64,000 bases of DNA, taken from Pelomyxa schiedti. Lineage: Eukaryota > Protista > Evosea. Below the pieces are notes generated by a model that had not been told where the DNA came from, did not search any database, and saw nothing but the letters and a program-made list of their open reading frames with translations. The position numbers were made by a program, and so were the translations under genes. Shown piece by piece: positions 13,655 to 64,000 of this stretch (the first letter of the stretch is position 1; the number at the start of each line of letters is the position of its first letter). Location of the stretch: contig JAHLWZ010000276.1 of the NCBI GenBank assembly GCA_020536535.1, positions 1 to 64,000 on the forward strand, written 5' to 3'.

Positions 13655-15880
13655 TCAGTCTTCTGTGACAGTGTTGCCTCCTGCATATTCTTGAATCATA
13701 TTGCTGGACTGGGGTGGCCCGCAATCATCACACCAAGATTCGTTTTTAGCTGGAGAGTTGTGTGGTGTCATCAGAGGCTCCTTCCTCTCTAAGTCCAGTT
13801 CACTGTGAATGTCATGGTGCGGGGTGGTTCTGGAGGGTTTGGGTAGGTCCATATGTTCATCATCTCACCAGTTCTGGAGGGCTTGGCAAAATAATCTTGG
13901 GGCCTTCCTACATAGCCGGTGACCTTTGTTGTTGTTGTCAGTCAGTGTTTGGTTGTTGATAATAATAACTTATTTGTTATGTGTTGGTTAAAATGGAAGG
14001 GAGGGAGTAACTGAGAGAAGTGGTGTGGTGGCAGCTTACTTGGTACCGCATTAGCTTGTTCAGCCTCTTCACTTTCACTTCTATTTTCTCAGGTGCACAC
14101 TGGAGCTTGAACACAAGTGATGATCCTTCACCGGGGCATTGTGGCCACGTTCCACCAAAACGACTGCACCCTTTCGGAATTTCAACACACAAGATGATGG
14201 AATCAGTTCCCGCCGTCATTGGAGTCATGAACACCGGTTGTGGTTTTTTCACATCATCGGCAGCTCTTCCTCCATTTGCGTTTGCATTTTCATGATCATT
14301 TCCAACATCACTTCCGCTGGGATGATCCGCTGCCGTCTGTAGTTGTTGTATGTTAGAATGCGTGCAGGCGGATATTAGAGAGCAGAAAGATAAATCGGAG
14401 ATAGATGGAGAGAAGGGATATTACTTGTCGTACTTCAACTTCAAATTCTTGGGTGGTTCGATTGCTACTACTAGTTGTTGATGATGTACTTACAATTTCA
14501 GTGTGAGGAACTTGTTCTGCTGAAGAAGATCGCAACGGAGCAGCCAGATCAGCCACCACCATTTTTGCTGTTTTCTTGTGGCGAACGGTCCCTGATGTGG
14601 TGGCAGCAAAAGCAGCAATCCTCTTTTTTAAAAACAACTGTTAGAGAATTATATTATACGGCATATATATGAATTACCGGTTTCTTGGGTGTTGGTTCAA
14701 CATATGCACAAACAGAAGCAGAGGAAGTAATTGCACTCAATGCCTTAGCCGCATCGTCATCATCATCAGACGGCTTGACTTGATTACTCTCAAGCTGATC
14801 ATGATACTTTTGATGTGCCTTCACCAACTCGTCTTTGCTGTGTGATTTCTCAGCCTGAAGGGCAGTGATCTTTCTTGACATCTGAGAATTCTGCTCTTTA
14901 AGAAGTGTATTCTCCTTTTGCAATTGAGTCTGCATGCATGCCTGCCGGAGAGGTTAAAAATGTGCCTGACTCCACAAGTGAAACGGGTTTTTTTTTTCAA
15001 TTAGTATGTGTGGGAATATTGAGAAGTGACTGAACAACTCACGTTGCTATTATTATTATTACTGTCAATATTGTTTTGTTGCTACTACTACTGCTACGCA
15101 AAAGAGTGAACAATACCAGTTTCTTTATTTCTTCATCGTTGTCTGCAGCCTTTGAATTCAAAGCAATTACAGTGTCATCGGCTTTCTTTTTGGAAGTCAT
15201 GAGAGACTCGAATTCTTTCGTGAGTTGCTGATAGGAGTCTTGTGCCTGTGCAAGTTCATCGTTGCGGTGTGCGACATCTCCCTCGAGGCCACCCACCTTG
15301 ACCTTCAGAGCCCCGTTCTCCTCGTCCGACTTTGCGAGCTGGCTCTGCAGATTGGCCAGTTCATCCTTCATTGACTGAGCCATCTTCTCCAGCACCCCTC
15401 TCTCGGCCGCGAATGTTTCTCGCGCCGCATCCCGCTTCGCTTCTTCCCTCGCGCTCCGGCACCGTCTCTCACTCTCCTGGGTTATCAAAGAACAGCACTC
15501 CTCCTGGTGCTTGAGGCTCTGCTCGACCACCGCCTTCTCGTCCTTGATGGCGTCCCGCTCCTCGGTCACCTTGGCCAGCTTCCCCTTCGCCGCGCCCAGC
15601 TCCCGCGTCGCGCGCTCCACCACTCCTCGCTGTGCTTGGCATCTGCCGCCGCCGCCGCCGTTGGCGCCGCAGCTGCTGACGGGGCCGCCTGGGCCGGTGC
15701 CTTGTGGCGGAGCCGCTTCTCGAGCGCGGTCACCTCCTCCTCGAGCCTCTGCTTCGCCTCGATGGACGACATCGTCGCGGCGCTCGCGGCACGTCGCTCC
15801 TTGATGATCTGGGAGACGAGGGCCGCGATGGCGAGGGTGCGACCACAGTTACGATGTCTTCTTCTACGCCCAGCCGCGGA
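13655..15880 (-). CDS. Coiled-coil protein, multi-exon; apparent 1-nt frameshift near 15623
   Basis: Heptad-rich ORFs 15039-15623 and 14654-14935 plus downstream exons. The upstream frame ..KHSEE switches to VVERATREL. Confidence 0.55.
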
Positions 15881-15931
15881 GGTGGTAGTGTCGGTGGGGG
15901 GAAACAACCATCAACATCATATCTGGATCAG

Positions 15932-16081
15932 TGGGCGGTGATTTTTTTCCCTACAAAAAGTGTAACATCACCACCCCGGGCGGTGATTTTGGGCGGTGAT
16001 GATGCACTTTTTGCAGTCAAATCGGATCACCGCCCCGGGCGGTGGTTGAGCACATAAGCCAGTCAGTAAAATCACCGCCCT
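15932..16081. repeat. Seven subterminal GGGCGGTGAT/ATCACCGCCC repeats in both orientations
   Basis: Copies near 15933, 15967, 15978, 15991, 16026, 16037 and 16071. Conserved at 62623-62785 with one extra copy. Confidence 0.9.
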
Positions 16082-16120
16082 GGGTTAACCACAAGAAAAA
16101 AACTTTTTTTTATGTTGCTC

Positions 16121-19098
16121 TTAATCTAACTCAATATTTAACAGTGCTGACAGGCCAGTTAAAGCCACTATTTGTCGCAATAAGCACTCCCAAGTGTTGT
16201 GTGTGTCAGATGAAGAGAGCCTTCCTCGACAACAAGCCTCTTTGAGGCTCTTATGCCATTTATTCATTGCCTCAGCCAGTTCTTGTTTTAGAATACTTGG
16301 GGGACCATAGAATTCAGCATCTGACCAAGAATGTTCACACCAATAGTGAACTGAGGGGTTTAGCTTTGGGCTAAACAAGGAGTACAAAGCTAACATGTTG
16401 TTCCTTGTGGTGTTCCACCTTTGGTGTATGTCATCTGTCAACCTTTCACAGTGCAGCCACTCATACGCAAAATGCAAAACAGACACAAGATCATCAAGGA
16501 TACTCCTGATTGTCCGGGTCTGTGTGACATGTGGCCGCCACAACACATCCACTTCCTGATCTAACTCAGTTTTGACCTTTGTTGAGAGAGCATCCCAAAG
16601 GTGATCCAAACACTCTGAAACCATCACTTCCTTGGCTATGTTTGCCTGAAAAGTTTTCTTTGGCCAGTGAGATGCACATGTGTTGATGGCAGTCTTCAAG
16701 GCAGTGGCAATTGCTTTATAACCTTGAGACTTCAGCCATGTGTGACATGATGACAAGAGATTCAACATCACATTTGTGAAACAATGCAGAGGATCATACA
16801 CAAGTCGCTGTAAAACTGGCTTGACAAGCTCTTGAGCTTCTGTTAGATGGTAATAAAACTGCCAGATGTCATTCTTCCAGTCTCTCAGTTTGTGCTTCAC
16901 ACAAAACCCACAACCTTCCTTGATGCAAATACAGTGGTCATCACAGGATGCTTGTGATGCACTGGGCATGGCACATGAGGATGACAATGGCACAGCTTGC
17001 ATCCAGTCCACACAGCAACAAGTTCTCACAGGCACATTTGATGAAGAACCATCAGTGAGAGCAACAGTTAACTCCCTCTGGTGAAGAGCATCCAGGAAAG
17101 CATCAAAGTGAATCTGTGCCTCAATGTGATGCAAAAGCAGGGAATCACAGGAACCATCCTGTTTCAACATTGCTATTGTTCCAAAGCAAGCTTGGTGTTG
17201 AGGAGATTTGACAGAGCCAAGACTCAAACCATAGAAGAGATTTTTTCCCCAGAGCTGCCTCCCATCAATGAAGCCTTTCACCAAGATATGGCCCAAACCA
17301 TGAAGATACCACAATCTGTGAGAGGAAGCATGTCGAACAAGAAAAGAAAACATTGCTGAACAAGAGAGAAATGCACCATTTAAGGGGGTTTGCAGTGGTG
17401 CTATATGGGCCCAATCACTGTGCTCATGCAAACATTGCTGTATTGCCTTCTTCCTCTGCTTCAGCTTCAGTAGTTTACACAAACACACCCATTTTGGATT
17501 TGACAAATTCATCCGCAGCTTCACAAATGTACTTTTTTGGATTTCAGCAATTCGCTCACTTTTTTTCTCTGGTGACCTACAGCTTTGGGCATGTTTCCAA
17601 GTTGTCTCAGAGGAATCTCAAACAAAGATTTAACAAGCTTTTTTTATGTTTTAAGGCAAAACTTTTCAAGCATACGTTGATAAGTTTGTGTCACAGACTG
17701 TTGGAGTTCAGCATTGGTTTTTTCCAGCTGATCATTGTGTTGTCTCAGACCTTGCAGTACAACTTCATACTCTTTTTGCTTTTGGGCCAGTTGTGTTTCA
17801 TACCTCAAATGTTGGGTGTGAAGCTCTTTTTGCAAATCCTCCACAGTGCTTTTCAACATTTGTACTTGATCTTGAAGTAAATGCCTCTCTTGGGAGTATT
17901 GAAAAGAGCAGAAACGTTGAGTTTCCTCTCGAGTCTTCTGTAGCATCTGTATTTGTTCATCATGAAGGGTCTTCAGATGTTTTTGTTGTTGCTAAACAAT
18001 GTTACTAAATAAATGTGTAAATGGAACTTACTTTCAACTCAGTTAAGCAAAGCTGTGTTGTTTCAAATTGGGAACTTTGAGATGATTTGAAGTATGCATT
18101 GTATTGCTGGCGCAGTGGAAGTTGGGATGAAGGGACTGCAGGGGGATCTTCAGTCTTGGAGGTTGGAGTGGATGAAAATGGTGAAAGAAGTTTATGATGG
18201 GGACGGAAAAGATCTTTAAGAAGGAGTGAGAATGTGCTTTCTTGTAATAAAAGATGTGTGGTATCATGAATTTCCTCAATGTCAGTGACAGGCACATTTC
18301 TAAGAGCACCAGCTTTAGTAACAACCTCCATTGTCAGCAATTCTGATGTGTCAGGTAACTTCTCAGCTGCCTCAGAGCTGAGCAATGTGATGCGAAACTC
18401 CCCCCAAGTGTTTGCAACAAGGTGCTTGTTCTCCCTCTTTTGATTTTGAAAGATCTTCACAACATAATGTGGGGATGCATATCCCCACACTGTTACTTGC
18501 TGTCCCACAGTGAGAACAACAATGTCAAAAGGAGTTTTTCTCTCCACCTTCACTGATTCCCAATACTTCACCCCACTCTTTGCCACACTTTTGATTTTTT
18601 TTTCTCCACTCCAGAAGTACTTTTTTTGGGGGGTGTATCTACACACCTCATCCTTTTCTTTTTTGTTCTTCTTTTCTTCAATTTTCATCTTTGCCTCTCT
18701 TTCCTTTTTTTTGGTTTCAATTAGTTCTCGCAATGCTGTTGCAAACTTTTCTCCTTTCTCCCATTTGACTTCACCATCTTTGTTCAAACACAAAGACAAC
18801 AGGTGATCTAATTCTGAGACAGCACATTTCACTCCCTTCATTTTTGGTATCCAATTCATGTCAGGTTCCTCATCTATTGCAATACAGTGCTCAAGGCTAT
18901 TGTACCAAACTAGATTTAAATTAGTAATTGTTACTTGTGAAGAGATATGACCTGTTGATTCAGATGATGTTGTAGAGGTACAAGAACTTTGCTCATTGGT
19001 GTGACATGGGTTGTCCTGACTTACAGAGTCACTTGCACAAAGAGAAGGAGTATCTTCATTCAAAAAGTCTTCTGGTAACTGAACATCAACCACCTGTT
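16121..19098 (-). CDS. BAH-like + coiled-coil + RAG1/Transib-type DDE transposase (spliced; 5' part in gap)
   Basis: Motifs KGFIDG (D1), CVDW (D2), CGFC, DPLHC, PSVHYWCEH and QELAEAMNK (E) occur in RAG1/Transib order. Introns 17992-18031 and 17617-17675 join the ORFs in frame. Confidence 0.8.
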
Positions 19099-19203
19099 TC
19101 AAANNNNNNNNNNNNNNNNNNNNNNNNNNNNNNNNNNNNNNNNNNNNNNNNNNNNNNNNNNNNNNNNNNNNNNNNNNNNNNNNNNNNNNNNNNNNNNNNN
19201 NNN

Positions 19204-19438
19204 TGGTAGTAAGGTGTATGCTGCGTATTGCAGCCTGTACCTGCTCTGAACCAAAGTAGGCCTGTGAAGTGACAAGTGGGGGGTAGGTGTTTAGCAGTGC
19301 CCGGCCCTTTTGCAAGGCATCTTCGGATATGTCATACAAGTACACGGAGTAACCATGCAAAGCACACTGAAGTGCAATCTGGGTGCCCAGTAAGCCGGCA
19401 CCCACCACAACTACGGTGTGTATATCCTCCACGGTCAT
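19204..19438 (-). CDS. 3-hydroxyacyl-CoA dehydrogenase, N-terminal NAD-binding fragment (cut by gap)
   Basis: VVVVGAGLLGTQIALQCALHGYSVYLYDISEDAL is the family Rossmann motif. Confidence 0.8.
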
Positions 19439-19599
19439 CTCTGTTTTGCGTTAATACATATGAATAAGTGGCGGGATATTTTAGTGCACCCTACCACAAG
19501 GGAATAAGTGCGACGTGATTAGTAGGGATATAAAGGAAGGCGTATAGCAATCGGGGTGATATTCGATTATGGGGATGGGGGAAAGGGGGAGGGGACATT

Positions 19600-62608: not shown

Positions 62609-64000
62609 CATATCTGGATCAGTGGGCGGTGATTTTTTTCCCTATCAAAAAGTGTATCATCACCGCCCAAAATCACCACCCGGGCGGTGATTTTGGGCGG
62701 TGATGATACACTTTTTGCAGTCAAATCAGATCACCGCCCCAGGCGGTGGTCAAGCACATAAGCCAGTCAGTAAAATCACTGCCCTGGGTTTAACCAAAAG
62801 AAAAAAACTTTTTTTTAGGTTGTTCTTAATCTAACTCAATATTTAACAGTGCTGAGGGGTTAAGCTTTGGGCTAAACAAGGAGTACAAAGCTAACATGTT
62901 GTTCCTTGTGGTGTTCCACCTTTGGTGTATGTCATCTATTGCAATACAGTGCTCAAGGCTATTGTACCAAACTAGAACTTTGCTCATTGGTGTGACATGG
63001 GTTGTCCTGACTTACAGAGTCACTTGCACAAAGAGAAGGAGTATCTTCATTCAAAAAGTCTTCTGGTAACTGAACATCAACCACCTGTTTCAAATTTACC
63101 ATCAATTTATTGGAGAAAGAATTAGACAAGTGCAGCAACAGGTGCAGCGACGGGTGTGGTGATGGATGTGACGACGGGTGTGGTGACGGGTGCGGCAATG
63201 GGTGCGGCGACGGGTGTGGCGATGGGTGTGGTGATGGTTGTGGCGACGGTTGTGGCGATGGGTGCAAGGTTTACCTCTTTGTATTTTTCAATTGAATTCA
63301 CAGACAGCAAAGAAGAACTTGATGAGTTTCTATCACCAGAGTTGTCACTATCAACATTTATGACATCTACACAACATTAATATATTAAAATCAAGGCTGC
63401 ATTACCATCATCTTCTGATGAAAAGGCTTCATCATCCAAGCTGGAAACAGGGTAATCCCTTGGTGATCCAAAATGTTGAAGTGAGGTTGAGGGTGCATGT
63501 CTATGTGGTACACGAAGAGCATGTGAATGTTTAGGTTTTTTAGGTTCTGGTGGCTGAATTGATTTTGAAGATTTGGGTTTTTTGGTTTTATATTTTGAAG
63601 GTTTTTTTTGTTGATTTTGGGGGTATGTTTCTTTTTGGTTGAGAGGAAGCAGGTGCTGCTGATTGTTTGTTAGCTAAAGGGGACAACACTGTAGTAGTGT
63701 GTGTGGCACCTGTTGGTAGCAATCCAGTTGAAGTACCCTTTGTTGCACCCATCCTCACCACACCCGTCGCCACAGTTGTCGCCGCACCTGTTGCCGCCAT
63801 CGTCGCCGCCATCGTCGCCGCCACCGTTGCCACCATCGTCGCCGCCATCGTCGCCGCACCCGTCGCCACCATCGTCGCCGCACCCGTCGCTGCCATCGTC
63901 GCCGCACTCGTCACCACACCTGTCGCTGCACTTGTCACCAATGTTGTAGCTCCCCCCATGGCAGCCACCACACATTTCGCTGCCGCACCAGTCGCCACCA
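62609..64000 (-). mobile_element. Internally deleted non-autonomous copy of the RAG1/Transib-like element (runs off window)
   Basis: Colinear patches match 15918-16150, 16351-16436, 18870-18914 and 18983-19103, then the copy continues into sequence missing from copy 1. Confidence 0.92.
63130..64000. repeat. Two oppositely oriented 12-bp minisatellite blocks (GGCGACGGGTGY)n
   Basis: 63140-63266 reads ggcgacgggtgt..; 63745-64000 reads the complement ..cacccgtcgcc. Confidence 0.8.

Follow-up and report, generated by a model that had tools for sequence, protein, structure and literature searches.

We analysed the first 64,000 nucleotides (nt) of contig JAHLWZ010000276.1 from the amoeba Pelomyxa schiedti (Evosea; assembly GCA_020536535.1; the window, numbered on the forward strand) and identified, on the minus strand between 15918 and an assembly gap at 19103, a spliced transposase gene whose exons encode a predicted BAH-like domain, a coiled coil and a predicted RAG1/Transib-like DDE core. 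These exons are part of a DNA transposon bounded by terminal inverted repeats (TIRs). The RNA data are contigs of three single-cell libraries (X1, X2 and X3; one sample, one study), aligned to window positions 15000–19102, and the DNA data come from one run (X4). The features of the locus, in the direction of the gene, and of a second copy in the window are as follows.

19103–19202: assembly gap of 100 N, hiding the 5′ exons and the 5′ end of the main copy
18952–19093, minus strand: exon encoding an acidic, Ser/Thr-rich stretch, acceptor at 19094/19093
18910–18951, minus strand: intron of 42 nt, GT..AG, in frame; joint 18909/18952 in X1, X2 and X3, also in NCBI model P0007
18032–18909, minus strand: large exon with a helical region, a Lys/Glu-rich helix, the predicted BAH-like beta domain and a Ser/Thr/Pro-rich linker
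18698–18907, minus strand: N-terminal helical region, about 70 amino acids (aa)
18356–18625, minus strand: ordered part of the predicted BAH-like beta domain (model residues 10–99)
17992–18031, minus strand: intron of 40 nt, GTAAGT..TTTAG, phase 0; joint 17991/18032 in X1 and X2, also in P0007
17676–17991, minus strand: coiled-coil exon, 105 codons plus 1 nt
17617–17675, minus strand: intron 2, 59 nt, GTATG..TGAG, phase 1, between coiled coil and core; joint in X3
16121–17616, minus strand: core exon, 498 codons plus stop
17264–17266, 17006–17008 and 16271–16273, minus strand: candidate catalytic residues D, D and E
16925–16927 and 16910–16912 (C), 16346–16348 and 16331–16333 (H), minus strand: candidate zinc ligands
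15918–16120, minus strand: 3′ untranslated element end with repeated CACCGCCC/GGGCGGTG subterminal motifs, TIR at 15918–15941
62609–64000, minus strand: second copy, internally deleted, 1,672 bp, continuing to 64280 of the contig (C276)

Long open frames lie in series on the minus strand (19102–18005, 17946–17644 and 17524–16121). The RNA contigs contain three spliced joints, all GT..AG on the gene strand (CT..AC on the plus strand for 17992–18031 and 17617–17675), and none of the three (18909/18952, 17991/18032 and 17616/17676) was found in DNA run X4. The first-pass annotation of this DNA, made from the letters alone, had proposed the introns 17992–18031 and 17617–17675 and called for an RNA check of both junctions; both are skipped exactly, the former by contigs of X1 and X2 and the latter by X3, with neither skipped in X4, and the weak acceptor that it had noted for the latter indeed reads TGAG. 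Each exon was translated singly, and none of the four (19093–18952, 18909–18032, 17991–17676 and 17616–16121) contains a stop. The frame across the junctions was obtained by phase arithmetic: exon lengths of 142, 878, 316 and 1,496 nt leave phases 1, 0, 1 and 0, giving a single frame from 19093 to the stop at 16121–16123.

The intron 2 joint (17616/17676) is carried by one contig of X3, with flanks of 155 and 225 nt, and if the intron is left unspliced the frame stops at a TAA at 17644–17646. In the C2729 subfamily, intron 2 lies at the same position, with the same donor (CAAA/GTATG) and phase and a canonical acceptor, TTTTTTAG, and the frame continues through the downstream exon to the conserved core start. 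Furthermore, in the annotators' model P0008, built on the copy on contig C1186, one protein comprises the barrel, the linker, the coil and the core. Thus, the earlier proposal that BAH-like part, coiled coil and transposase are joined in cis in one frame is borne out by the RNA joints, the phase arithmetic, the conserved intron 2 and P0008.

Two details of the proposed gene structure had to be revised. The front exon, taken to be uninterrupted, contains the additional 42-nt intron at 18910–18951 in all three RNA runs, and it does not begin at 19103. Beyond 19099 the RNA contigs continue in sequence found in an upstream exon of the second copy (62609–64280), which places the acceptor at 19094/19093 and two more 5′ exons in the gap. 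The second copy keeps both TIRs and carries several internal deletions; it retains the start codon (~63522), the two short 5′ exons and an intron of ~190 nt that the main copy lost in the gap, and the N-terminus that begins at its start codon is also present in P0008. Across the gap from the front exon lies the start of an unrelated, 3-hydroxyacyl-CoA-dehydrogenase-like host exon. The P. schiedti assembly was scaffolded using RNA read pairs (PMC8887013), and the adjacency of this exon therefore need not be real.

The gene belongs to a multi-copy TIR element. In the 52-Mb genome we found 78 fragments matching the core frame and 17 matching the front exon, in constant order wherever both are present. 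The element ends in a 24-nt TIR, CATATCTGGATCA(G/A)TGGGCGGTGA, which was found 68 times in the genome versus 0 for the reversed control, and complete deletion derivatives with the same TIR range from 87 to 1,994 bp. DNA depth is 60 in the flank, 285 over the gene (~5×) and about 1,000 over the terminal 300 bp. A TIR-bounded copy of 4,095 bp on contig C791 (L049:2182–6276) represents a 53%-identical subfamily with related TIRs and its own subterminal motif, GGGGCGAAGG; its BAH-like frame and its core frame are both open, and the coiled-coil region between them is interrupted by an in-frame TGA and could not be given a clean splice model. The element ends read CATATC or CATAAC, with no heptamer-like CAC start, and in 22 of 35 ends the adjoining outer base is G, frequently as part of a G run, so that insertions look like G/.../C. 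The borders surveyed were those at 15918 and 62609 in the window and those at L029–L035, L049 and L056–L075. One 87-bp copy lies in a perfect 12-bp palindrome.

The core is predicted to be a RAG1/Transib-like DDE transposase. Its language-model features match the RAG1_RNase_H/ZnC2/ZnH2 clusters at 0.94 (171 shared), and nine of the ten best matches belong to the same family or clan. The candidate catalytic residues are spaced by 86 (D–D) and 245 (D–E) residues, and the motif order D, D, Cys pair, DxxH, Hx4H, E is kept across two distant lineages. The second of these is represented by an intact open reading frame (ORF) of 599 aa on contig C1768 (L025:888–2687, minus strand), which shares 21% identity with the core at an hhalign probability of 97.7%; both keep FxDGR (FIDGR), xDW (CVDW), ICxKxxC, DPxHC, HYxxEH and ExxN. 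The C1768 ORF is without the BAH-like and coiled-coil front end, and it has no relatives in the word-indexed database. In order and spacing the core motifs resemble D600, D708, C727/C730, H937/H942 and E962 of RAG1, a correspondence that is a lead rather than a test.

The 105-residue coiled-coil exon gives weak coiled-coil-type matches only in Pfam. For this segment a parallel, in-register homodimer was predicted with a score of 0.56, versus 0.04 for the best of three controls; the runs share at least 96% of contacts, and the partner chain has a predicted local distance difference test score (pLDDT) of at least 84. Among proteins solved as same-chain pairs, 21 of 30 reached the dimer mark used here, against none of 23 solved as single chains; for eukaryotic proteins the counts were 17 of 29 pairs and 0 of 30 single chains. 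The prediction supports a coiled coil that pairs two chains.

The first-pass annotation had assigned a peptide pattern at ~18255–18570 to a BAH domain. The pattern is present in the minus-strand frame, within the open frame 18005–19102. The front domain that contains it is conserved in five divergent lineages at 20–60% identity, with invariant residues W14, G27, W31, G50, V65 and I67, and it is under purifying selection: between subfamilies, the ratio of non-synonymous to synonymous substitution rates (dN/dS) is about 0.27 at a dS of about 0.9. Between-subfamily identity is 36% for the front domain versus 54% for the core. A profile of the domain, searched against 1.84 billion representative proteins, matched three proteins only, all of them Pelomyxa models of the same family and none from outside Pelomyxa, and searching the P. 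schiedti genome with a profile yielded only additional fragments. Therefore, the front domain is an orphan by sequence and its alignment could not be deepened.

The AlphaFold check suggested in the first-pass annotation returned a model that resembles a BAH domain. AlphaFold 2 (AF2) was run first on the 241 residues of the front part; in this model confidence was low for the beta region (pLDDT about 55) and highest for the N-terminal helical region (pLDDT 70–87). A cropped model of 153 residues (18194–18652) has an ordered part, residues 10–99, at pLDDT 64–83, with a mean pLDDT of 57 and a predicted template modelling score (pTM) of 0.54. In an exhaustive VIA comparison with 48,161 PDB representatives, the ten best matches were all BAH domains (Z 3.9–7.4). 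They represent six kinds of protein and include ORC1 (Z 7.4 over 85 residues), TNRC18 (6.7), DNMT1 BAH1 (6.4), MET1 (6.3), ZMET2 (4.2), ASH1L (4.0) and Rsc2 (3.9), and all seven matches at Z ≥ 5 are BAH domains. The best non-BAH folds, a capped Tudor and an NTF2-like protein, both reached Z 3.5, and rank 50 stood at Z 2.5. Foldseek placed the mouse ORC1 BAH domain first, as the sole match with a low root-mean-square deviation (rmsd), for both models; the cropped model aligned to it over 62 columns at an rmsd of 2.6–2.9 and a probability of 0.98–0.99, with E-values of 0.01–0.04 for the first model and 0.09–0.2 for the cropped one. A structure search of the ESM Atlas was mixed, with one Pfam-BAH cluster at template modelling scores of 0.43/0.51. 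In a comparison with ORC1 by eye, the domain lines up at the N-terminal YxW, at the VGQxVxV strand and at the P(x)Y position, and of the cage aromatics only the equivalent of Tyr63 is kept (H/Y/F before VVKIFQ). Judged on these models, the front domain is likely to be a BAH-type barrel. Additionally, the helical region upstream (18698–18907) is conserved in the copies on contigs C450, C699 and C791, including its His/Cys positions, and is a candidate DNA-binding part.

Taken together, the gene is read here as the single gene of a young TIR transposon and its product as a chromatin-docked transposase in which a BAH-like domain, a dimerising coiled coil and a RAG1-like core are spliced into one protein, an interpretation that we consider about as likely to prove right as wrong. 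Removal of at least five short introns would yield a protein of roughly 1,000 residues, about 943 of which can be read here, with a low-complexity N-terminus followed by the small helical region, the BAH-like beta domain, a flexible linker, the coiled coil of ~100 residues and the core. The coiled coil would pair two chains in parallel, and the RAG1/Transib-like DDE core would cut and join the element ends. The two BAH-like modules of such a dimer might attach the enzyme to nucleosomes or to a chromatin protein, and the docking could direct or restrict the sites and timing of integration, as the PHD finger of RAG2 does in trans for RAG1 and chromodomains do for the integrases of Ty3/gypsy elements. 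This arrangement suggests an element that uses chromatin to place or time its insertions. We infer, by analogy with the PHD finger of RAG2, that the module may act as a histone-reading targeting device. A more specific version is tentative and, in our judgement, somewhat doubtful: a RAG1-type recombinase with its own chromatin reader, whose two copies, paired by the coiled coil, would recognise a particular histone mark or nucleosome surface and guide integration to a given chromatin state. RAG1 and the RAG2 PHD finger would then have an independently evolved equivalent on a single polypeptide, to which retention of intron 2 might add a core-less BAH-like and coiled-coil protein that restrains the enzyme.

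A number of observations weigh against the chromatin-docked transposase. For the front domain, every sequence method was negative, so that the BAH assignment of the first-pass annotation stands on the predicted fold and fails by sequence: Pfam, which it had named as a check, gave no BAH match and no family at E up to 10 on the exon and eight front-domain paralogues; Pfam BAH (PF01426) searched over the whole genome found a DNMT1-like locus on contig C1048 only; the front-domain profile matched no BAH chain among PDB sequences; language-model features in the ESM Atlas scored 0.76, below chance level; and hhalign of the domain against the host DNMT1-like BAH exon gave a probability of 0.2%. The AF2 alignment held seven paralogues only, and residues 100–153 of the cropped model, the C-terminal third of the proposed BAH domain, were modelled as disorder. 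All VIA Z scores are below 8, a range that the tool describes as compatible with a common arrangement, and the match covers 70–85 of about 155 BAH residues. By eye, three of the four aromatics of the ORC1 cage are without a counterpart. As to the core, which had been called RAG1-like, the language-model features and the motif order agree with that claim and the hidden Markov models (HMMs) do not: no Pfam family, including the RAG1 core profiles PF26100, PF26025, PF26101 and PF26104, was found for the window core, the C791 copy, P0003 or the C1768 ORF, and PDB profile searches for RAG1/Transib chains returned noise only. No target-site duplication, of 5 bp or any other length, is present at the borders of eight complete copies. 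Finally, the splicing of intron 2 is seen in a single contig of a single run.

The front domain may have the fold and still not read histones. A BAH-type barrel could bind a host protein or the element's own subterminal repeats (GGGCGGTG in the subfamily of the main copy, GGGGCGAAGG in that of C791), with a role in end recognition or assembly like that of the N-terminal DNA-binding domain of most transposases; we regard this as rather unlikely. Pfam recognises no other DNA-binding domain upstream of the core, a subfamily-specific motif is repeated several times at each element end, between-subfamily divergence is faster for the domain than for the core (36% versus 54% identity), and the ORC1-type cage looks unconserved by eye. 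However, the best structural matches are BAH domains that bind histone tails, the upstream helical region could bind DNA instead, and BAH domains are not known to bind DNA sequence-specifically. A similarly low probability attaches to the domain being unrelated to BAH, that is, another small beta barrel or sandwich whose likeness was produced by an AlphaFold model built on a shallow alignment. The seven-sequence alignment, the mean pLDDT of 57 and pTM of 0.54, the Foldseek E-values of 0.01–0.2, the Z scores below 8, the uniformly negative sequence tests and the mixed Atlas matches would all fit such an artefact. On the other hand, models from two different crops agree on the ORC1 BAH domain, and the ten top ranks of an aligner that does not depend on Foldseek all go to BAH domains, drawn from six protein families and clearly separated from the next fold; such an enrichment of a single rare fold is not expected by chance.

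The two remaining alternatives concern the gene product. The main front-end product might be a truncated BAH-like plus coiled-coil protein without the core, made by retention of intron 2 and ending at the stop at 17644–17646, which would pair with the full-length transposase and restrain it, like the repressor made by intron retention in the P element. The acceptor in the main copy is the weak TGAG, the stop directly follows if the intron stays, NCBI models P0007 and P0009 end there, the spliced joint appears in one of the three RNA runs, and the coiled coil is predicted to dimerise. Nevertheless, no RNA contig is listed with intron 2 retained, and the spliced form exists, with its phase and position kept, next to a strong acceptor, in another subfamily. 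We consider it quite improbable that the truncated form is the main product, and its existence would be compatible with a chromatin-docked transposase. It is far less probable, to the point that we reject it, that the BAH-like exon is part of the neighbouring host gene and not of the transposon, as the deposited P0007, which spans the gap and joins the two, would have it. The join in P0007 crosses the 100-N scaffold gap; the RNA leaves the window sequence at 19099 into the transposon's own upstream exon, as found in the second copy; the exon accompanies the core in every copy; and DNA depth is 285 as opposed to 60 in the unique flank.

The chromatin-docked transposase proposed here can be compared with several known systems. 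In the V(D)J recombinase RAG1–RAG2, the PHD finger of RAG2 reads histone H3 trimethylated at lysine 4 (H3K4me3) and works in trans for RAG1. The P. schiedti protein resembles this recombinase in combining a predicted RAG1-type DDE core with a module of chromatin-reader fold and in acting, as predicted, as a dimer. It differs in that the module is BAH-like rather than a PHD finger and resides in the same polypeptide rather than in a partner protein, in that the protein is encoded by a mobile transposon whose TIRs start with CATATC and which shows no 5-bp target duplication, and in that the divergence of the core puts it beyond the reach of all RAG1 HMMs. Transib elements, such as that of Helicoverpa zea, are likewise single-gene TIR elements encoding a transposase with the RAG1 core motif order, and they make 5-bp target duplications. 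Unlike them, the family described here is spliced from at least six exons, carries a helical region, a BAH-like domain and a long coiled coil in addition to the core, and leaves no duplication. The transposases of typical Transib elements contain the core and no other identifiable domain (Kapitonov and Koonin 2015, PMC4411706). Among BAH domains, the predicted barrel is most like those that bind methyl-lysine (mouse ORC1, 4DOV/4DOW; TNRC18, 8DS8; DNMT1 BAH1, 7LMK; MET1; ZMET2), with Z 4.2–7.4 over 70–85 residues at an rmsd of 2.5–4.7, and it differs from them in that it has no sequence-profile match, covers only about half of a canonical BAH domain and, by eye, mostly misses the cage.

Mobile elements are known to recruit reader-type domains, presumably tethering integration to a chromatin state, and the P. 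schiedti family would be like them in this respect; chromodomain Ty3/gypsy elements such as MAGGY are one example. Fusions of transposable elements with chromatin readers have been catalogued, and most involve Chromo and PHD domains, including hAT-Chromo (Grau-Bove et al., bioRxiv 10.1101/2021.11.30.470311). In the portion of that catalogue covered here, BAH occurs only as a domain of a host chromatin protein (ASH1L), and that portion highlights no BAH–transposase fusion and no fusion with a RAG1/Transib-type enzyme (bioRxiv 10.1101/2021.11.30.470311). In our literature search, no mention of Transib together with the amoebozoan genera tried was found among the twelve best-ranked papers.

The known elements that borrow readers almost all carry chromodomains or PHD fingers on retroelements or hAT-type elements, and RAG1/Transib-type enzymes have been described as bare cores that, in vertebrates, rely on the separate RAG2 for contact with chromatin. 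If the reading offered here is true, the P. schiedti element would represent a second, independent solution to chromatin contact by RAG1-type enzymes, would offer a simple system in which to study how chromatin tethering shapes cut-and-paste integration, and would extend the known uses of the BAH fold.

The deposited gene models of the locus are wrong, in that the gene is split and its halves are fused to neighbouring genes. NCBI model P0007 is a chimera in which the dehydrogenase-like start is joined across the gap to the front exons and which ends at the TAA at 17644–17646, and P0001 is a chimera of the second half of the core and a downstream coiled-coil gene; in the window, P0007 spans 16121–19450 and P0001 about 13700–16880.

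RNA contigs of two runs also skip 16351–16389 (39 nt) and 17404–17651 (248 nt), both in frame and both with non-canonical ends that share 2 nt of microhomology, and the second skip is attached to a stretch carrying two 2-nt deletions. Rather than from splicing, both skips probably stem from transcripts of defective copies elsewhere. The host histone loci are interrupted by assembly gaps. Outside the transposon family, the DNMT1-like gene on contig C1048 (L037, about 1450–2400) encodes a BAH domain followed by cytosine-C5 methyltransferase motifs, which suggests that this amoeba may methylate its DNA.

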